Source: Bugula neritina | Lineage: Eukaryota > Animalia > Bryozoa | DNA length: 64,000 nt | NCBI GenBank assembly: GCA_964035545.1 | Contig: OZ037768.1 | Location: 9,146,741 to 9,210,740 of the forward strand | Direction: 5' to 3' | Shown: one piece after another, positions 6,392-26,400 of the stretch | How the letters are laid out: the number at the start of each line of letters is the position of its first letter | Position numbering within the stretch: the first letter of the stretch is position 1 | Made by a program: the position numbers and the translations under genes | The notes under the pieces: generated by a model | The model's database searches: none | The model's input: only the letters and a program-made list of their open reading frames with translations | Told to the model about the DNA's origin: nothing

Positions 6392-8460
6392 TTAAAAATG
6401 AAAACAAATTTTACTAAGCACAGCAAACACACCAATCAAGACACTGAATTGAAAAGTAGCTGCTCCATTATCGTCATCACCTACACTGCTGTCATCATCA
6501 TCGTCGTCATCCTCGTCATCCAGTACCACTCCGTCCAACTCAAGGTCAATGATTGGGTCGTACAATGCCATTGAACTGAACATAGGGATTCTACATTTGA
6601 GTAAGGATTTTCCTCCGCTTTGTTCATATTCTGGATATCCTTCTGCCATATCCAGTACTTTGCCATCTATTTCAACCTGAATAAACCGCCATACAATCAC
6701 AATACGAAGGAAATTGATTTCTGTGCGACAGACATATGCTGTTTATACAGTATGTTATTACTACCATGTTACAGTCTGCTGAACTAGAGCATGCATACTT
6801 AGGTGGCAATAGCTTACATCAAATATTATCAATAATGTTTCTTACATAAAACAAAATATACAATGCAATGCTGTGTACAAAATTGATTAGAATTATGTCA
6901 GAAAGTTATATTCAGATGTGGGCACGTCATTGGATGGATAATCAATAATATATAATATAAAACACTTTTCTGTATTCCCAGTTCATATTTTTATCTATAT
7001 TAAACATATAAAGCTACATTTAATAAACAATACATTGGTTGGGGAATTTTCTTTCATTTCAAGTAGAGGGGAAGGTGTAATAATTGATACATTATCATTA
7101 TATTATGCTCAAGACATTTTAATAGAACACGCGTAAATAATATAATATTTATACAAAGATTGGGAAATAACTGTTTTAGTAGTTGCAAGTCATACAAGCC
7201 TCTATAGTGAAGTTTCACACGACATAAAGAGAAAGCAATAAAGCCTTACATCTCTCTGTATATAATATATTAAAAAACTACAGTTATAACTACCTCCTTT
7301 TATATTAACTGAACTTATAAAATTTCAGCAGAAAACTAACTTATTTCATGCACCACATGTTACTTCAAGCTAGTGGCTATGAAGCAATTTTTAATTTTAA
7401 TAAAAAGTTTTGCACTAGTTTTTATTTAGCAAATGTCTGTATTTACTTATAAGTCATTTATTTACTAGTTGTAGGTTTGAGTTCAGTGATTTTCCAAATG
7501 AGCTAAAATATATTATAGGAAATAGCATTTTTTTGACCTGCTTATAGGTCTAAGAGTGAAATCATTGAATTTTTGGCCTTTTCATCAATGCATTAGTATT
7601 TTTATTCTTATTTTATATTTGTGCATCACAAACTTTTTAACAATTATTCAATTATTTGTTGTATGTTCCTACAAACTTTACTTGTTAAGTTTATTGTATA
7701 ACAAGTTTATAGAAGTCTAGTTATAGTTCTAACATATTTTATATAAAAGATTATAGAATATATATTTCATTAAAGTGCAATCACATGAATGTACTAAGTT
7801 GTTATCAAGTTGCTATATTGTGTTATTTAGAGTTATCTTCCTATGACCGCCAATGAGGGGATAAAAATCACAAAAAAGTTTCTGTTAAATGTGCTGTACT
7901 TAAGCAATTTCTTGTTAACCATTAATCTACATGCATCATACCTATAAATTATAAAGTATTTCATAAAATATACGGTTTAATTATCTATTTAGTGCTGCAC
8001 ATAGTCATTAGTCTGGGACTTGGATTTAAAAAGAAATTTCTTTGTTTACCTTTTTCGACATGCGAAGAGCAGCCGTTCCACCCAGTCCATAAGTGTCAAG
8101 GTTTTCTTTGGGTCTTTTAGCTTTAGCAGCTTTTGCTTTTTTCTTACCATAAGCCACCAGTGTTACCTCTAAAGCTTCTCCAGTTTCCAAGTTTTTCTAA
8201 TGTTATTAAATATCAAATGCTATATTTTTCTATTGAAGGGTATTATATATAATTTATATGACACGAAACTTGTGAAATTATAAGTTAAGAATATTATGAT
8301 CCAGCAGATTTTACTAAATTTGTGACAAAACAATTGCAAGTGCTATATTACAAGTTTTTAAACCAAGGTCCTAAAACTACATCAACTTGTTTAGCAGGTG
8401 AGAAATCTTTTAAATTCAATTAGTTTTTGGTATTATAATATGTAATATAGCAAATTTTTA

Positions 8461-13418: not shown

Positions 13419-16400
13419 CTACATATCTTCATCGTCGTCCTCCATTATACTGAATGCATCAGTGTTGGTTACTTCTTCATATTTGTGACTTCGGAAAAAC
13501 TTTCGCTTTTTATGAAGATAAAGAACAAATACATCGCACACAATGGTAGCAATGGAGAGTAAGGCAAGCCCACTGCCTATGTTTTGAAGAGTGGGAATAA
13601 CATTGAAAGCAGCAGCTCTAGCATCCATAGTTATAATAAACAGAATGCCATAAGCTTTGATTAGTTGCCTCTTCTGTACGTCATTTTGGAAATAGTTGTG
13701 ACTAAACCTGTAGTTGTAGCCTTTGGCAATCAAACTGTCTTCCCCTAAAACATATATTGTATGCATTAATAGGCTACAGTTTTAAAGTTTGCATGGGTTA
13801 ACAGGCTAAATTAAATGTCGTGCTAACTATTCCCTTTAGCAGTTGACAGAATTTATAACAGCTACTATTTGTAACTTGAACTATTTTTTCTTTCTATCAG
13901 GAAAAATAAAAATTTTCAACATACCCAAAAGAGAGAGTAAGGACAGTATTATACACAATCTAATGGCCGAAATGCAAGCAGAAAGTATATAATACAGACT
14001 AGCAAAGGATGGTTAAACTGATAAACATTCAAGCACTGACAACATTACAGAGCTTATAACTTTCAAATGTACTGAAACCATATTGCACAATTTATTCTGA
14101 CTTATGACAGACACAATATGTATTTTCTGTCGAAGCTGAAATTAGTAAAATGGAAATAGCTTTATTCTGATTGGTTAAGGAATACTTATTTAGATGGTCA
14201 AACTGTCGTCTGAAAAAACATAATTACATGATATATAATAATAGACATAGTAGATCAGCCGTGCATTAAATAATATGTTCAGGTAGCAAATAGTCATATC
14301 ATAATAGAGTAGACAATTTCAAAATTGCTGTTTATATGTCTATGCATATGGTGACCAAGCAGCACCTGTAAGAAGAAAAGTCTGCTGATAAAGAAAGCAC
14401 AATAGGCACTCTATTTATGCCGAGCACTGCATTTGCAGACTTTTAACCAAATTTGTGTTGTTAAAAATTAATTTCAGGCTAAAGCAGCAGTTTATGGTTG
14501 AGTATATAAATTATAGGTCTAAAACAGACAACAGAAAGAGATAAGAATGAAATAAACTAAATATATAAAAACACTATGTTTATCTATAATCAGCTTCGAG
14601 TCAAATAGTAAAAAGTATTTACAAACATAAGTATGAGGTTAAAATTCCCTAAGAATTATAATGGCTGCACCAGTTTCCGAAAACATCTATTTTACTGTTG
14701 CAACATGAGCTCCTAATACTGTGACTGCCTCTATATATATTATTTTCAGTAGAAAGTTAGCCATCAATAGTAAAATAACTAAGAAGCATTGTCAGCAATA
14801 ACTTCAGTTGATTTCTATGATTAGTGCCTTCCATGCTATCATCAATAATAAACACAGCATAATTTGGCTGAGATGCTAAGGCTTATAAAAAATCACAAGC
14901 AGTAAAATAAGTTGACAGCATGTTACACTTACCTTTATCTAATCTGTCGAAAGAATACTTTGGTTTACATAGTAAAGGGTCATAATCGAAATTACAATCC
15001 CACGATATCCTGATAGAAACCACACCGCCTACAACATATAATTTATAGATATTGTTTGCAACTTAAATATGTTGAAGTCTGTTCATGACAGCTAATAACA
15101 TCAGCTTATGCAACTAGTAGTGCTATTTTAGTAGTCTATGATAAAAAACAAAATCTGAAAGTTTCATTGAAATGAAAAGTTGAGAAATTCTAATGTTCAT
15201 CACTGGCGTTGCATTTTTTACTAGAAATTCAAAATTACAAAGAGAAGTGCAAGTTCTGTTGATTTGAGTATTTGCTCACCCATACATTTACCATTTTTTA
15301 CTCCAGCTGAATTGCTTAGCTTGTTGATTTGACTCAAGTTTTTAATTGACTTAAAAATTTTCATTAACATTCTGCAGTTCTTGAAATTCCCCAAAGCTAA
15401 AATATTGAATTGCCTAATCTAATTTTTAGCAATTGTAGTAAGCTCAGATATACTTTTTTGAAGCTGGTATGATTTAGTTTTTTTTTTATACAACGTTCAA
15501 AACTTATTTCAATGCTGTTAGAGATTTCATAGTTATTGTAGTTCAATGGAGTTCAACCATTTTCACAATATTTATTTTAAATTTCATTATTATTTATTGA
15601 CAGTAGCTAAATGTCAATTCAAAAATAACTAAACATAAAGAAAATATAATTTTATTCATGCTAGTAGTGCTAGTAGACGCATGTAACTACCCCCCACTCT
15701 GACTTTAATTATTATATCTTAGAATTCTTTATAAACATTAAATAATATATTGACTTGATCAAGTACTTATTCAATTGAAATTGAATGAGTCAATTAAAGT
15801 TATTAGCCAACTTGATTTTTTCGTCCGGAATAGGACTTAACTTTGTTAGTCAATGGCTTGACTTGATGTGACTTCAACCAAGGTTTGAAATTTTTTTTAA
15901 ACAATGCATTAAAAAACCATAGTAATTTAAATTTAAATTTTGATTTTAGGCTTTGATTATGGTTTTACTTATATTAATTGACAAATAGGCCATGAAATAA
16001 ACTAAAACTGTAAACACAATCCTAATTCAAAATTTAATTAATAACAGTAAATAAGCTAATTGCAATGACTACTGGGTGTTGGCATTGTAGCTGTATTTAA
16101 ACTTTAGTTCAACAATTGAAGTTATAGTTACAACTATCAAGTACCAAGGAACATAATAATAACCAAACTTATTTTTAAATTGAACTGGGTAAGTAAAGCG
16201 ATATGTGTTGCCAACAGTGCTACTAGTACTAGTACCACTCACCTTCATATGCCATATCATCATAAGTCTGCTTTTTCGTCATCTGTAGTTGAGCATGGTC
16301 GACAATGTAGCCTAATCGAAACACTGGGCAGAATGGATCACTGGCAGCATCATAATTGCAGCCTTTCAAGTAGCTTGCATTTGTAGATTCAACTATATTA

Positions 16401-17023
16401 CTTCTAGTCTTTTTATAATAAGGAAAATATACATGATTCTTAATCAAAACAGTAAAAGTTTTAGTGGCATTTAAAACTGGGTACCTAGTTGGAAGTTTAT
16501 TGTGTTCAATAGGACACCATGCTTCAACCATACACGTTTTTGTGGTTTTATTGCAAATTCCAGTCGTGACACCGTGACCTAACAAAAATGGCTTGTGAAT
16601 TGGAAGACAATCTTTATCTTCCGTGCAGTTGGCTCCAGGTACAGTCGGACTTTCAGCACATTCAGACGGACTTTGATCATTTGTAATTATCATATTTGTC
16701 ATAACAAAAAATGCATTGTTCTCTTCAGCTGGCATCACGATGTCGGTTGAGTCCCACAATTTTTGGTTACCAACTCTAGGATCTTCTGTATACGCAACAC
16801 CTTTGACTTTTGTCGTCGTCCCAGAAACACCCACATCCTCGAGTTGATAGCCTTTCTTGTGAATAAAGACCCATCCAATAATATAACCAATAATTGCGAG
16901 TTGTACAAGCCTGTTAAATATTCCTATACTTTTTGACTTTATATGAACAATTTTAGGAGTATCATACTCAAAAAATAGAGCAATTCCTCTTTGCACATAC
17001 GAACATGCATTGGTTTGCGCCAT
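13419..17023 (-). CDS. P2RX4-like: P2X purinoceptor (ATP-gated cation channel, P2X4-like), ~400 aa, 3 coding exons
   Basis: Exons 16243-17023, 14933-15028, 13419-13744. N-terminal FFEYDTPK, TM1, ATP-binding TKVKG, FTVLIKN, NYR, RQLIKAYG, all 10 ectodomain cysteines, TM2 NIGSGLALLSIATIVCD, C-terminal KYEEV. Confidence 0.96.
15751..15890. repeat. GACTT(G)-rich dispersed repeat fragment, related to 49218-49590
   Basis: Repeated TGACTTGA / GACTTAACTT motifs; similar motif clusters at ~15320-15360, 49218-49590 and ~52855. Confidence 0.4.
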
Positions 17024-17475: not shown

Positions 17476-20400
17476 ATGGCGGATGACAAAGAAGAAACAG
17501 TTGAGGTAATATAATTACAATACTTTTTGAATTTAAAACTTTGAACAGCTGGTTAAAATTATAAAACCGTTCAAGCTTCTTATTGAAAGTAAAATGACTG
17601 AAGTTAGCTAAGTTATTATAATTAATAGCTAGTGACTGTCATAATCATAATGACAATAATCATCACATTTAAAATTTTGGGATTAATTTAAGTATCTGTT
17701 CTAAATTTAAAATAATTTTGACTTATAGTTGCAATGTTAACCTACCAGGCTAAGCTCAAGCTCCAGCTCCAGAATGTTTTGCGTTGGCTTTCGTTTGGCT
17801 ATCACTTGTCGGTAGCTTTAGTATCTGCTAGCTTGTAGCTCGTCAACATCGGATCATCTTACAATAGTAGCTAATATCGATATATCACAAAATATTTTTA
17901 AAACTATTATTTTCAGTTATTTGTAAAAATTTGAAACATTTAATTTAAATACGACATCAAAGTTACTATAGTCACTATCATGTAAGCATTTTGTGGCATG
18001 TGATAGCTTAATAGACACCCCTGGGCTGATCGTGTACGTTGTAAGTATCAAAACCAGTAAATGTTGAAAGTCAATATTTTCAATTTAGCTTCAACTCATT
18101 TAATAGTTATAGTTATAAGCTATGCCTATAATAGCATAAAAATTGCCCATATAGCCATAAAATAACATAGTTGGGACCCAATTACTCACTTCAAACTATT
18201 GATAAATTACACTATCTTAAGTAAATTTATACACCTGGAAAAAATTAGGTTTTATCTTGCTTACAGTAATAAAATTTATTAAGACTAGCTTACTTGACTG
18301 TGCACTTGGAACATGCAGTCACTTCGATCTGACAAAAACTAGTACTTTGTGTCATGATTTTTCATAAATATTATAAACTTAAAAGTATGAAGCTGAACTA
18401 ACATTGTTTTGTGATTGGAATGGTATAAAGCAAATTTAAATTTAGTTAAGAAGCATGCAAGTTTATTCGAAATACAAATTTATAATATTTATCTATAAAT
18501 ACTTTTAGACTAAACAAGAAAGATCAGGAAATGTTGGTGCATTATCTATTGAAGATAGTGCATTTGAGTCTTTGGAAAAAGATTTTCAAGATGTTCTTCA
18601 AGAATTGATGGGCGATAGGTGATTATTATTTATACAAGTACAGCCTACCTTTAAAGTTTCAAGTATGCATGTGTGTTTAAGCAAATAGTTGTATTATAAA
18701 AGGTTGTACTGGAAAAATTTTAGTAACTACTTTTGTTGGTTACATTTCTCACTTGTGTTTTGGCAAAGGCTTATTAATTGACGATGACATAATATTTTGC
18801 TGCTATAATTCAAGTAATTAAAAACATTGAAAAAATAGGCTAAAATATATTCAACACAATAATTAGTTTTTTTGTTTTCTTCATGCACTTGTGTAAATAT
18901 ATTTAATTATTTAGTTCAAAAAAAATTAAGCTCAGAGTAAACAGTCTACTTGCATTTGGTTGTTTAAATTTGTAGGAGTTTAGAAAAATTCAGAGTAGAA
19001 TATGAAAAGTTGCACCGAGCTCTAAAGAAATCTCATGAAAGTGAGAAACGGCTGATGGCAAAATGTCGCGAGTTGAACGCAGACATAGTTTCAAATGCTG
19101 CCAAAATGCAAACAGCATTAAAACTTTCTCAGGAAGATCAAGCTACTATCGCATCTCTGAAGAAGGTTAGTGAAAGTGTTAAGCGGTGAACAGGGCAACA
19201 GTGTAACACCATACGCTGAGAGGGGGAAATGTTAGTGTACATAAATATTGTTTTTCCAGGAGATAGAAAAAGCTTGGAAAATGGTTGATGCTGCACATGA
19301 CAAAGAAACTCGAGCAAAAGATACAATCCAATCTCTGAAACAAGAAATTGCCAACTTGAGTAAGTTAGTTGAGCAGGGAGCTGGTTTGACCATGGGACAA
19401 GAGCACAGGTATGCAATACTAAGTAGTTTTATTGGCTTAAATGCATGTCCAGTTATAAAAACTTTTTAATAGAATGTTGTGTGTAAAGACTATAATATTT
19501 ACTAGAGTTGAAATTTAGCAATAAATAATATTTCGTCATTTAACAGTGATTTGACTTCAAACTTTTAGTGTAAATGAATTACTCAAAGTGAAGGAAGAGT
19601 TGACAAAAGAAAGAGATGAGCAGTTGAGTGAAATTGTCAAGTTGAGAGAGCAAATGGCAGAGTCTGAAGCTGAGCAAAACAAGTTGGAAGAGGCTCATGA
19701 AGATGCCAAACAAAAGATCCAGGAGGTATGAGCTCTAAACCAGGTCTATGCTTAAGCTATAGTCAAAGTCTTTAGCGGAAGTCCAATACTACATTTTAGT
19801 GTTTCATCCTAGATATTTGTAGTGAGACTTGAGAACTATTACAAACCTGACAAAAATTACAGCTAATAGCTATTCACTATAATAAGGGAATAGTATATTT
19901 CTAACAATAAAATAAATAAACTTTATACTCTTTAAGTTGATCGTTTTGCTTGTTTCTTAAGAACACCTGAAAAACCTTTTACATGCATATAATGCCTATG
20001 TTGTAACGTCATGAGTCATAACTTTTAATCTCATAGCTCACTCAAGATATTCAAATGAGAAACAATGAGGCTCAAAGAGAATCGAGGCGGCGAGATAAGA
20101 TGGAAAAGGAGCTAAAGCAAGCCAAAGCAGACTATGAAGCAAAGAACGGCGAAGTCAAGAATCTTATGGGTGCCATAGACAGATACAAGGCAGATGTAAA
20201 TAAACTGGAACAACAGCTGAAAGAGCAAAGAGTATGTATTAGATAACCAACCGCATCGTTTACTATGATTGCAGCCTTTGAGTTTTAATAATTTGAAGTT
20301 GTCTTCCTTCAATTGTTGGTGCACAAATCTTAATACTTTGTAGTTATTTTGGTAAACATGATAAAACATACTTATCCACATTCCATATCAATTTTAAAGT

Positions 20401-23400
20401 ATGGTTTGAGGAGAAGTATGTTCTGTTATGAACCAAACTGTAAAGCATTTTTCACTGAAAGACTTTCGACTGCTTTAGATCACCAACGAAAGAAACATAA
20501 AAGAAAGTGACATATTGAACAGTAGATTCCAGAAGTTGCAGCAGGACCTCCAAGAGCAGATGGTTCTATCTGACAGTATTCACCAAGAGAACCAACAGAA
20601 AGCTCTGGAACTCAAAGTAATACATCCTAATCTATAAAATCATTACTGAGTCAAAGTTTTTTAAACATTTCTTTTTTATTTTGTCTGCAACTGAAAGTTC
20701 TAGCAGTAGAGAAATGCGTACTTATCCACATTCCATATGCGAACTAACTACGCAATGTGAATAAGTACGATTTTCTCAACTGTGATTGCAGCAAAAAGAA
20801 GACGAAGTCAACAATCTTAAGAACGACACGAATCGACTCAACCGAATGAGAGAGACTATTCAGAGAAGGTTGAGGACTGTGGAGGATCACAAGGCTGAAG
20901 TAGAGCAGTCAAAGGAGACACTCAAGGGAAACATTACCGCCTTAGAGAGAGGTTAGTAAAAACTGCATTCAATTAGTAGGATATTTCAATTATCAAGGAA
21001 AATCATCCAAAGTCAGTGGCTTTTTAAATTAAAAGAAAAGCTATGTTATGTAAAAAGCTTTAGTACAAATGTGTATGAATTCAAAATGAACGTCCTGTGT
21101 TTACAGAGTTGGAATCAGCCAGAAAGCAAGCTGAGATGGACAAAAAGGCGATTGATGACTTGGTAAGGGAAAGAGATATTTTGAACAAGAATATGCTGAA
21201 AGCAGCAGCAGCTACTCAGAAACAGCTGAATTTGGTGAAACTGCATGAGCAGAGCAAGAAAACCTTGGAGCAAGAAATTCAAAACTACAAGGAAGAGGTT
21301 TGTAAGCCGCAACATCAATTATATCAGTACTGAGTGGAATGGATAGCATAGATCAACTGCTTTCAAAAATGACAATTACCAGAGAAATTATTAACTTAAA
21401 GTTTTCTACAGCAATCAAAATTGTAAAAGAAGAAGTATTACAAAATTTTAAGAGTGCATGTAGTGTACTGAGGTCATGATATATAACATAAACTAATGTT
21501 TTGGTTAGGAAAATTTATTCACTTATTAGAAAAAAAACTTTTTTTTTTTTCATAAAAGGCTCAGAAGCAGCGTAAGATAATATACCAGCTGGAAAAGGAG
21601 CGAGACAGGTATATTAATGAGGCTAGTGACTTGACCCAGAAAGTCCTTCAGCATATGGAAGAGGTGAAAGTCAGAGAAATGTCAATATTTGACTATAAGA
21701 AGAAGATTGCTGAAGCTGAAACAAAACTTAAGCAGCAACAAAACCTGTACGAAGCTGTGAGGAGTGACCGGAACTTGTACAGCAAAAACCTGATCGAAGC
21801 GCAAGTAAGAAATATTAGTAAACAGATAGAGTTAGATTCCAAAACTGAATGCATGGTTCTTCATAGGACCTGCTTGAATACATATGTTGTAGAGAAGGGT
21901 GTTTGGCAGTGTATAGGGTGCGTACTTCATAACATTCCATATGTATCAAAAACTATAGCCTGTCATGAAGTAGGCGCCCCATACATACTGACTAACTCCT
22001 AACCCGTGTCAACCAGTATATCCATGTACAGTAGTGGTCACAGCTGCCGTGGTAAGAATGCTAGTAACGGCATACTTCATAACATTCCATAGTGTAACTC
22101 AATATAAGAGTGTTAGGAAGTATGGCATTGCCACCAATGATATACTAGAAGAGTTGTCATCACCATACTTCAAAGCCTCAATCCGCTACAAACATATATA
22201 TTCATATAGGCCTTATCGCGCCATTAACTAACTCATAGTATTTTGCAGTTTTTAAGAATATGATTATTGTAAAAGAGAGATTAGAATTTTCAGATATATA
22301 TGAAAAGATACCATCAAGAGGACACACCTATTTGGGTCATGACCTAATTATATGTGTAGTTTGCTCTTTTTAGGATGAAATCACGGAGATGCAGAGAAAA
22401 CTGAAGATCATGAACCACCAAATAGATCAGTTGAAGGAAGAGATAACTTCTAAAGAGCAGTCTCTGGTGAAAGAACATCTTGATAGACAGCGAGTGGAGA
22501 AAGAAAAGGACAATCTTAAGGTAGAGCAACTCCCATTAACTTTAGACTCTACAAAGTATATAACAGTATATTGTAAAATAATTACACAAGGCACATGAAT
22601 GTAATTAATGTGGCTTTTCATCACTATAGCGGCTCAAAATACCAAATTAATTTAACTTTTGACTTCACTGGAATTTTGTAAGTAAAATTAGACTGCTGGG
22701 TATATAATACAGATGCGTCATATACGTGCATATTTTCTAAATGTTTTCACTCGCAATATCACTGTGACAAAATTCTGAGTACTAGTTTATTAGTTCAGTT
22801 GTCGACTAATATAACATAAGATATGTGTTTTGGCCATTTTTTCCTAATAACAAGAGAATTATGATTTTAGTATGAAATAATAATTTAGGCTGAGCTTCAA
22901 AGAATGAAGCAAATGGCTGCCGAAAGCAAAGCTTACATTGAAGCACAAGAGGCTGAAGAAAGAAAACTTCTCAAGATTATTTCGGAAGCTGATGCCGAAA
23001 GAGTGAGACAGAAGAAAGAACTGGATCAGGTTGGTTAACCTAGATAGAAGTAATGCGGACACCATTTCTGGCGTGAATATCTTTCCAAGTCCGTGCTTGC
23101 GTGGTGTGAATATGTGTACGTGTGTATATAGATATGCAGCATGTCAAAATACTTTGAAAAAAATTAATAAAGTAACAAAGTTTCTTGAAATAATCAATTT
23201 GTATGACTAACTTGGGCAGCAAATTGTATGACAAGATATTTTAGGGGTATGGTTTAGGCCTATAAAATATTTGACAGTTGTTGCAGTATTTCTTCATTTT
23301 CCATAAGCAAAATGGCTGAAACAATAATAGCTTTGTGTACGATTATGCTGGATATAGAAGAAATTAGTAACAGTAAATATATAATTATATAGCTGTAATC

Positions 23401-26400
23401 AATATACTATTATTACTAGTACTACTACTTGTAGTAAGTAGTACTAGTAGTGGTAGTACAAAAAATATGCTAATTTATACTTGCTCAGTTAAAATTATTA
23501 ACAGAAGGTTGTCCTGATTTAGATATTAGAAAACTAGGTCAAGTAACTGGGTAACTACTAACTACTAATGGCAATTAACTCTGACAACCAAGCAGAATAT
23601 TATGTGCAGTATCAGTCTTTTAACAGATCTCTCCACAAGTTTCAATATTGCTAAAAGATGTTAGTCTGAGATGCTAGCTGAATCTACCAACATTGTACTC
23701 AACTACTGGTTATTATAAATTCAACTTTAGGTTAGACACATGTAACATCTTCTGAAAGATGTCTTGTATGTTTGTTTCAGGTGATTAGTGAGAGAGACAT
23801 TCTCGGAACTCAGCTAGTCAGGCGAAACGACGAGCTAGCTCTTTTGTATGAGAAAATCAAGATTCAGCAATCAACTCTTAACAAAGGAGAGATTCAGTAC
23901 AACCAGAGGCTGGAAGACATCAGAGTTCTAAAACTCGAAATAAAGAAGTTGAGAAGGGAGAAGGGTATACTCCAGAAGAGTGTGGCTAACGTAGAGGATC
24001 TTAGGTAAACAGCTGTTTTCAGCCTTTGTAGTCTTATGCTGGTGTCCAAATCAACAAAGTTTCAAACTCACATTTTGCATTGTATAATATTATAAAGGCG
24101 TGAAGTCTACCACATTCAACGAGAACTGCTGAGGGAGAGAACGAGATGCAAGGCTTTAGAAGAAGAGCTAGAAAACCCCATGAATATTCACAGATGGAGA
24201 AAACTAGAGGTAAGGTGAAAGAAAATCAAGACAACTGTGAATGCTTCATTACCTACTCTGTTCGCAAATATTAGTTCATGAAGAACACTTTTAAAAACAA
24301 TAACTCATTTCATCAGGGTTTTAAAACTACAGTCCTTTGTAAAATACTAGATGTTGCATGTGAGCGAGTGAGTGAGGTGTTGAATGTTATGCTATAGCAA
24401 GTGGATCGGCTGTTATTGGTGCTCAAAACAATATTTTTTACCATATACTTGTTCCGTGTACTTCTAGTAGTCGGCCATGTTTACTACTAGTTTTACTATT
24501 ACTAGGCCAGTGGTTCATCTCAACTGTATCAAATAAGCTAGATATGAAAAGCAAGACCACATAAATAGATTAGCTATTAATAATCACAAAGTTACTATAC
24601 AACTACGATAGTGTCTTGTATATGGTTTTATAGTAAAGAGCCAGTCTTTAGATCAAATGATCAGTAGTTTCGTGAGTTACTCTCATTTACTTAGTGACTT
24701 TCCAACTGTTTGAATCCATGTACTAATTATAGTACAGTAGTTGGTTTATAAATAGTAAACACTGCTACTAGTATAACACTGCTAGTACACAACTTACATT
24801 TCAGTTAGAGATTTGATCCGGTAAAAATTTCCTTGTCAGGGTCAGAGCTAGTGGTGGTGTGTCCCTGTACTGCACTGCAGTATCTATGCTATTTATTCAA
24901 CTTGTATACTCTACATATGCTTTACATACATATGTCTCTCTATCACCAACTCAATAGCAACATTACATTTTATGCTGGTAAATAGTGGATATCATTAGTC
25001 AGTTACTAAATCATCTGTCTATAGAATAAAATAAGGGCACGGTAAGCTGAGGCTCAACTTTCACCAGCTGTTGAAAGATCTAGCATAAAGCAACCCGTAA
25101 AGGGGGTTTGCCGCCATGTGATTGATGTGAAATAAGAGAGGCATAATGCTTTCCATATAAGCACATGCTGACTAGGTACTCAGGCACAGGCACTTTGTAG
25201 GCTGCCTTATTTATTAACTAGCTATAAAGACGAGTTGATGTGAATGGCCAGTGATTAAGCCACATCGTTAATTAGAACTAATTAATTAATACTGTGCGAA
25301 TGCAGGTTTTGGCCTTTGTTTCATTTAGATCTCTCCATAATGACCATCATACTTCTCACAAACAAAGGTCTTATATGTTAATGATAATCATACAAAGATG
25401 ATAAAACAAAGAGGCCAATACCACTGCCTTTAGCAGCAGAGAACTTCTGCAATGCTCATCAAACTAGACATACATTGACTGCACCTGACACCCTCAGCTG
25501 ACTTCTCATTGATGTTCTTCTATATTGAACCCTTATTTGGCATCACTCCGCTGATAGCTTCCCAGCATTTCCTATGAATTGGACAGGCTTCTCTTAATAA
25601 TAATATTGATGGCATCTATTTAGTTCTTAGCAATAAATAATGGCTGGCAGAAAAGCGCTGCTCTACGAATAGTATTTGTTCTGAAAACAACAGAAAATAC
25701 GATTTACCACCTTATGCCTGCAGCCAGTTTTGTTTGAATTCAAACCAAGAGAGTTTTAGTCCATAACATCCAGCTCATGTTTTTTCTTTAGTATAACTAG
25801 TATTTCTTATTTATTCAAGATTTAGCATAATTACATAATACTATTTTCACTAACAACTTTGAACAATGTTTATAAATGTGTAAAGGCTGAGCTTCTGCTT
25901 TCAAACTGGAGTTAATAATTTATTTTGACTAAACACTGGCTAAATAGATAAGGTCGTACTTTCAGGGTTCTGATCCAAGCACTTATGAAATGATTCAAAA
26001 GATTCAAGCGCTGCAGAAAAGGTTGATTGCAAAGACGGAAGAAGTGGTTGAGAAGGAATTGCTGATTCAGGAGAAAGAGAAGTTGTATGTGGAACTGAAA
26101 CATATTCTAGCTCGACAACCAGGGCCTGAAGTAGCCGAACAACTTAGCATTTATCAGTCAACACTCAAAGACAAGACCAAGCAACTCAAGGTAAGCTGCA
26201 TACAACAAATTCATCAATTTTACATCAGCCTTGCAATCCATGGAGAAAACAGTTTTTAAAACTAGTAATTTTACAGTTTTCGAAAAACTAACATTTTTGT
26301 CATAAAATGGGAAAGTAGTATTATGCTTGCTTTTAGTGATTAAATCGTTTATGTGCAGTAGTAGGGAAATTTTAATAGCCTAAATTATTTAATTCTCTTA

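Follow-up and report, generated by a model that had tools for sequence, protein, structure and literature searches.

Does CFAP58, a cilia gene of the bryozoan Bugula neritina, harbor a cluster of mir-1 genes on the opposite strand of its introns, or are the hairpins found there something else? The question arose from a 64,000-nucleotide (nt) stretch of genomic DNA, hereafter the window (C4:9146741-9210740 of a 216-Mb assembly; C4 is contig OZ037768.1), in which an original prediction placed four diverged hairpins of the miR-1 family, antisense to the gene and spread across its introns. miR-1 is an ancient muscle microRNA (miRNA), among the most conserved in animals, and most invertebrates have one or two copies of it. 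The comparative sequence evidence assembled here suggests, with a probability that we put at roughly 0.8, that the four hairpins (hp1 to hp4) are genuine and selectively maintained mir-1 paralogues that run antisense to CFAP58 on the minus strand and give rise to 3p-arm miRNAs.

Four mir-1-like hairpins antisense to CFAP58

The recurrent motif on which the original prediction was built, ACATTCCA, has plus-strand copies at 20378, 20728, 21932, and 22082, and the minus-strand 3p arms agree letter for letter with those quoted, all four starting with UGGAAUGU. The whole window holds eight matches to the motif against 2.84 expected, a count that none of 100 shuffles got to, and the four sites linked to hairpins share a single strand and a span of at most 1.7 kb. 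Each was said to form one arm of a hairpin, and folding agrees: the minimum free energy (MFE) of the minus-strand precursors ranges from -25.3 to -41.1 kcal/mol, with z-scores of -2.5 to -6.8 relative to dinucleotide shuffles (Table 1). The copies keep nt 1-8 while their loops, star arms, and flanks differ, again as claimed, and the flanks bear no relation to one another. The mir-1 seed (GGAAUGU, nt 2-8) is present in all four hairpins and in all 21 hairpins of our alignment. Homology extends beyond the seed into the 3' half (AAGUAUG), with the mature sequence on the 3p arm of a 60-80-nt hairpin.

A search with the MIR-1 model of Rfam had been proposed as a check, and the family resemblance was borne out in alignment but not in score. 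With E-value reporting on a 2-kb interval (20250-22250), the Rfam mir-1 model RF00103 aligned at full length to all four hairpins on the minus strand (E values of 5e-6 to 3.5e-3), and in every case the minus-strand score exceeded the plus-strand score. All four scores lie below the gathering cut-off of 45.6 bits, which is an operational threshold rather than a biological definition, and a search of the whole window at Rfam gathering thresholds returned no matches. Linkage to mir-133 is typical of the ancestral mir-1 locus without defining it; no mir-133 match was found in 20250-22250 or in the whole window.

The identity of the host gene was confirmed by Pfam PF21771 (CFAP58_CC), which matches four plus-strand exons at 21106-21300, 21559-21804, 22389-22535, and 22904-23035 with E values of 5e-14 to 5e-42. 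The exons were searched one at a time. When exons are numbered by counting from the ATG, all four hairpins are antisense and intronic and bracket exons 7-10, in agreement with the proposed arrangement.

Covariation in the stem and the functional strand

Structure was analyzed on the 21-hairpin alignment, with a consensus derived by RNAalifold. All 21 hairpins agree at mature nt 1-8, 13-17, and 19. Nucleotides 9-12, by contrast with this frozen frame, occur as GGAU, GGUG, GGUU, UAUG, AAUG, AAAG, or AUUG, and the star arm changes to match. The paralogues can be told apart at nt 9-12 and 18-22. Compensatory double changes affect 12 of the 24 consensus pairs. The proportion of paired cells is 88.9%, compared with 27-46% when the partners are slid by one to three columns, and the covariation score is 0.48, compared with at most 0.14 in the controls; none of 500 shuffles equaled it.

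By established Argonaute targeting rules, the seed and the supplementary region are the target-pairing positions of a miRNA, and the central nt 9-12 contribute little. Because the frozen nucleotides are the target-pairing positions and the free ones are central, the copies should share the canonical miR-1 targets. The pattern amounts to a natural experiment on which positions of a miRNA are visible to selection: the seed and supplementary region are frozen, and nt 9-12 are free to vary with compensation in the star arm.

The same alignment bears on strand. Read on the miR-1 strand, the consensus pairs include 69 G:U versus 17 A:C combinations, and that strand folds better in 17 of the 21 hairpins, with a mean advantage of 5.7 kcal/mol. 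The G:U excess and the better folds therefore point to the minus strand as the functional and presumably transcribed one, antisense to the host, although CFAP58 itself is on the plus strand.

Conservation in other bryozoans

Related contigs were found by searching a protein collection with single CFAP58 exons and then fetching the encoding contigs. Relative to the window, the CFAP58 exons of these relatives are 81-100% identical in protein, whereas only 48-54% of third codon positions are identical, and so the relatives are well-diverged species. Runs SRR25569768, SRR25569771, and SRR25569777 and assembly ERZ4903317 are among their sources. Orthologous exons are present in L019, L025, and L029, and the synteny of mir-1 and CFAP58 in related genomes, which the original prediction had named as a check, holds: hairpins occupy the same introns in L019/L029, L025, and L030 (Table 1).

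At the level of single copies, the 22-nt mature arm of hp1 is identical in L029 (U at 1681) and L025 (U at 8436), and the intron is shared. The hp2 orthologues in L029 and L025 are identical at 21 of 22 mature positions, and the one in L030 is identical at 20 of 22, having C for U at nt 1 and an intact seed (nt 2-8). For hp3, the orthologue in L019 (1015-1088) matches at 21 of 22 positions, and the corresponding site in L025 holds the canonical miR-1 sequence, UGGAAUGUAAAGAAGUAUG. The hp4 orthologue in L019 (1159-1236) has an identical mature arm (22/22) and reaches 44.9 bits with RF00103, and that in L025 is UGGAAUGUAAUGAAGUAUGAUU, carrying ...AAUG.... The canonical sequence at hp3 and the ...AAUG... 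variant at hp4 of L025 indicate that the cluster descends from an ordinary mir-1, and on these sequences the derivation appears plain.

Aligned between species by blastn, intron 10 shows the two mature arms and nothing else. Between the window and the two more fully covered species, mature arms are identical at 164 of 176 positions (93%), star arms at 69%, loops at 31%, and basal flanks at 44-45%. This order of mature over star over loop, on a compensated stem, is the signature of a miRNA gene, and together with the compensatory changes and the strand-specific G:U excess, it upholds the view that these are selected miR-1 paralogues. The mature arms are under purifying selection, and the antisense layout has outlasted a divergence near saturation of synonymous sites.

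Two further contigs were uninformative as comparisons: L016, from a distant species with an unrelated intron, and L015, which is intronless or cDNA-like. In L015, a TARA metagenome scaffold, CFAP58 exons 3-10 are contiguous without introns (397-1763), with exon 10 90% and exon 6 43% identical; it is either a transcript-derived assembly or from an intron-poor organism. In three other contigs of a related species, intron 10 of CFAP58 is made up of palindromic ACTAGTCAGTCACTAGT-type repeats (L020 850-1190, L021 840-1040, and L022 485-669), which yield spurious plant-miRNA matches in Rfam.

Copy number and other mir-1 loci

Three scans of the genome, with an exact pattern, with RF00103, and with our own covariance model R1 (built from the 21 hairpins), agree on eight hairpins at three places in 216 Mb; these scans score the best candidates only, and very diverged copies may escape them. 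A dispersed repeat or a miniature inverted-repeat transposable element would appear as many scattered copies with similar flanks. With eight hairpins and unrelated flanks, the family is not a dispersed repeat, and the high-copy explanation that would have undone the original prediction does not apply.

The single copy on C1, UGGAAUGUAAUGAAGUAUG, has one change from the bilaterian consensus and lies 46 nt upstream of a mir-133 hairpin. That mir-133 scores 54.9 bits on the plus strand versus 48.7 bits on the minus strand in Rfam, and its canonical UUGGUCCCCUU start is on the minus strand only. An exact TGGAATGTAAAGAAGTA is found nowhere in this genome, and eight further genomic matches to TGGAATGTNNNNAAGTA have no hairpin fold.

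One additional candidate, an AT-rich hairpin on C2 (L012 5104-5181 = C2:28059103-28059180, minus strand), scores 41.3 bits with RF00103 and was not counted in the mir-1 family, its seed being UGAAAAGU. The 3' half of this hairpin is miR-1-like (GUAAAGAAGUAUGUA). It could be a chance resemblance, or a decayed or neofunctionalised copy.

Linkage to P2X receptor genes

The wider genome adds context that the original prediction did not include: there are two paralogous clusters, in the window and on C5, both followed downstream by a same-strand P2X receptor gene, and a separate canonical mir-1/mir-133 pair. In the window, Pfam PF00864 matches the P2X gene with E values of 1e-78 (16229-17023) and 7e-26 (13419-13766). 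This gene and CFAP58 stand head to head on opposite strands, with their ATGs (17023 and 17476) 453 nt apart, an interval that suggests a bidirectional promoter; the same layout is repeated in another species (L025). On C5, the three hairpins lie 545-1440 nt upstream of an intronless P2X gene. The pairing of miR-1 with P2X also occurs in L025, in L017 (a Logan contig from SRR4020083, 93% identical at the C5 locus with the layout kept), and in L023, from another species, where an intronless P2X gene is preceded by two GG-type hairpins, at distances of 640 and 850 nt.

Because the genome has only ≈11 P2X loci and three mir-1 loci in 216 Mb, two such pairings are very unlikely to have arisen by chance. 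The linkage suggests duplication as a block and perhaps co-regulation, and its recurrence makes co-regulation a concrete and testable idea. A P2X tree gave an unresolved polytomy in which the mir-1-linked genes were not recovered as one clade. Downstream of the P2X genes, the miR-1 seed has a single 7-mer site in the window and no site on C5, counts to which we attach no meaning.

The P2X family as a whole is expanded in this genome. Its ≈11 loci include C4 11.756-11.778 Mb; C5 7.70, 7.90, and 14.48-14.70 Mb; and C7 0.458 Mb. Several are intronless and tandem, and a divergent group of four on C5 (14.5-14.7 Mb) includes members with internal stops.

Table 1. Positions, strands, and scores of the hairpins, their host gene, linked P2X genes, related contigs, and other mir-1 loci. 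Positions refer to the window unless a contig is named; mature positions are plus-strand coordinates.
Feature	Position or source	Strand	Predicted 3p mature	Scores	Remarks
hp1, mir-1-like precursor	20357-20430	-	UGGAAUGUGGAUAAGUAUGUUU (20364-20385)	RF00103 39.0 bits; MFE -27.0 kcal/mol, z -4.4; R1 72.5 bits	CFAP58 intron 6
hp2, mir-1-like precursor	20707-20779	-	UGGAAUGUGGAUAAGUACGCAU (20714-20735)	RF00103 28.4 bits; MFE -38.8 kcal/mol, z -6.8; R1 68.0 bits	Occupies much of CFAP58 intron 7 (20617-20791)
hp3, mir-1-like precursor	21911-21984	-	UGGAAUGUUAUGAAGUACGCAC (21918-21939)	RF00103 40.3 bits; MFE -41.1 kcal/mol, z -5.8	CFAP58 intron 10
hp4, mir-1-like precursor	22061-22134	-	UGGAAUGUUAUGAAGUAUGCCG (22068-22089)	RF00103 39.7 bits; MFE -25.3 kcal/mol, z -2.5	CFAP58 intron 10; precedes hp3 by 150 nt on the minus strand
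CFAP58 host gene	17476-26259 at least	+			ATG 17476
CFAP58 coding exons 7-10	~20504-20616, 20792-20951, 21107-21297, 21559-21804	+			Order and splice sites read from sequence
CFAP58 exon 11	Start ~22374	+
P2X receptor gene	13419-17023	-			Shares the strand of the hairpins; hp1 is 3.3 kb upstream
All genome hairpins (8)	4 in window (C4); 3 on C5; 1 on C1
Canonical mir-1 (with mir-133)	L001 1373-1562 = C1:24673550-24673739	-	UGGAAUGUAAUGAAGUAUG
Second miR-1 cluster, three hairpins	L009 5267-6160 (L009 = C5:7695000-7704999)	-	UGGAAUGUAUUGAAGUAUGAUA, UGGAAUGUGGAUAAGUACGCCU, UGGAAUGUGGUGAAGUAUGCCU
C5 P2X open reading frame	L009 3538-4722	-			Intronless
L019, L029 (one species)	Logan run SRR25569768	-			4/4 hairpins across two contigs, same introns
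L025, also L026-L028 (another species)	10.3-kb ENA contig				4/4 hairpins, minus strand, same introns; P2X head to head with CFAP58
L030 (third species)	SRR25569771	-			hp2 site

Proposed mechanism

How the hairpins would be transcribed and processed, in which tissue, and with what effect on CFAP58, we infer from the arrangement of the locus. Transcription of the minus strand would begin at a promoter of the cluster's own, located beyond hp4, and would probably yield one clustered primary transcript, or else two (hp4 with hp3, and hp2 with hp1). Drosha and Dicer would then release 3p-arm miRNAs starting UGGAAUGU, which are expected to recognize canonical miR-1 targets. The likely role of such products would be added dosage or an extra expression domain rather than new targets. 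The single polycistronic transcript, the muscle-type expression, and the transcriptional interference with CFAP58 put forward in the original prediction are hypothetical features of this model. In L025, hp4 is only ≈30-40 nt from exon 11, so that the primary transcript should start within or beyond further CFAP58 exons, and some antisense overlap with the host would consequently be unavoidable.

Alternative explanations

Several observations weigh against reading the four hairpins as maintained mir-1 genes. Their RF00103 scores (28.4-40.3 bits) all fall short of the gathering cut-off, by a clear margin for hp2 (28.4 bits); the fold of hp4 is only modestly beyond shuffles (z -2.5); for hp1 and hp4, the plus strand gives a slightly better fold; and in L020-L022, from a related species, no miR-1 hairpin is present in the ≈630 nt of intron 10 that these contigs cover. 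As regards the scores, the canonical mir-1 of the same genome, beside mir-133, gets only 40.0 bits, so sub-threshold values are normal for this lineage, for which the RF00103 cut-off is strict. The low scores, along with the divergence of star arms and loops, are also what one would expect of functionless, decaying duplicates or of copies of a hairpin-forming repeat. We consider that explanation highly improbable, since only eight copies exist genome-wide, the mature arms are 93% conserved though synonymous sites are near saturation, and the changes in the star arms are compensatory.

Sequence conservation by itself is blind to strand, and the elements might instead work on the plus strand within CFAP58 pre-mRNA, either as sense intronic miRNAs with complementarity to miR-1 or as structured elements in splicing. 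Expression of CFAP58 always entails transcription of the host introns; the plus strand gives an equal or better fold for hp1 and hp4 of the window and for hp2 of L025; and only 12 nt separate the end of hp2 from the 3' splice site of intron 7. Against this, homology of the conserved arm to mature miR-1 is confined to the minus strand, G:U combinations outnumber A:C ones as described above, Rfam and R1 both score the minus strand higher in every case, and the hairpin types of the window cluster persist at loci without CFAP58, namely the C5 contig and L023. A plus-strand function is therefore very unlikely in our judgment.

A different kind of alternative leaves the hairpins as miR-1 genes and changes only the transcription unit to which they belong. 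They may be part of a long 5' leader or an upstream intron of the same-strand P2X transcript, in which case miRNA cropping would be coupled to P2X expression. Both extra clusters lie upstream of a same-strand P2X gene (the distance being 3.3 kb for the window cluster and 545-1440 nt for that on C5), the pairing is repeated in three other contigs, and chance is a poor account of it. In the window, however, the CFAP58 start and its presumed promoter stand between the cluster and the P2X ATG, so that a shared transcript would need to read through that region, and the P2X tree does not unite the mir-1-linked genes. We regard a P2X leader as unlikely. More doubtful still is the fuller version of this idea, in which the miR-1 cluster and P2X would form one conserved transcription unit, duplicated as a block, with the primary miRNA transcript serving as the 5' leader of the P2X pre-mRNA. 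If this were true, cropping by Drosha would control how much of an ATP-gated channel is made, the transcript in the window would run antisense through the CFAP58 promoter and exons 1-10, and CFAP58 and the miRNA/P2X unit would exclude one another. As a further speculation within this version, the CFAP58 introns could yield plus-strand small RNAs complementary to miR-1. A transcript of the cluster's own, antisense to CFAP58, remains our preferred reading.

Relation to known miR-1 systems

Like the canonical bilaterian mir-1 (RF00103; MirGeneDB MIR-1; the C1 copy), the window copies are hairpins of ≈75 nt with the mature sequence on the 3p arm, and they are identical to it in nt 1-8 (UGGAAUGU), nt 13-17 (AAGUA), and nt 19 (G). 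They differ from it in having GGAU or UAUG in place of AAAG at nt 9-12 and, in hp2 and hp3, C instead of U at nt 18. Unlike the canonical gene, they have no adjoining mir-133, and four of them lie within 1.8 kb. The C5 cluster and its counterparts in L017 and L023 have the hairpin types of the window cluster in matching order, an A/U-type copy followed by two GG-type copies, upstream of a same-strand P2X gene. The C5 cluster differs in having three hairpins rather than four, no CFAP58 opposite it, and just 545 nt between it and the intronless P2X gene downstream.

The antisense-intronic arrangement has a vertebrate precedent. Human miR-1-2/miR-133a-1 is located on the complementary strand of an intron of MIB1 (PMC3292888, figure 2 legend), and MIB1 as a miR-1 host is conserved in fish (PMC4177693). 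As in the window, miR-1 is thus antisense within an intron of an unrelated conserved host, in an arrangement that is stable across species. The bryozoan case differs in its host, its independent origin, the lack of a mir-133 partner, and the distribution of four hairpins over three introns, interleaved with four host exons. A precedent for retained copies with the same seed is provided by vertebrate miR-206, a paralogue of miR-1 with four nucleotide differences, all outside the seed (PMC3292888). Like miR-206, the window copies are retained paralogues that have changed only outside the seed, presumably with shared targets and different expression. Unlike miR-206, which is intergenic with miR-133b and derives from vertebrate genome duplications, they are products of local and segmental duplications that took place within bryozoans.

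Antisense-intronic miR-1 and same-seed paralogues were therefore already known from MIB1 and miR-206, and in view of MIB1 the arrangement is less exceptional than the original prediction implied; its interpretation as a whole is partly supported. The new elements are the occurrence in a bryozoan lineage, the number of copies, the way the cluster alternates with four exons of its host over three introns, and the linkage to P2X. This lineage has eight miR-1 copies, and four of them are interleaved, on the opposite strand, with exons of a cilia gene. In the literature library that was searched, no paper on bryozoan miRNAs and none containing these mature sequences came up, and the loci should therefore be useful anchors for annotating the bryozoan miRNA complement.

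Genome identity within the B. neritina complex

At a P2X locus, the window assembly (L032/L033, C4:11756100-11763000) is only ≈94% identical in nucleotide sequence to VXIV02003351.1 (L018) of the GenBank B. neritina assembly GCA_010799875.2. At this level of identity, the two assemblies probably represent sibling lineages of the B. neritina complex, and the genome of the window may belong to a different cryptic species of that complex.

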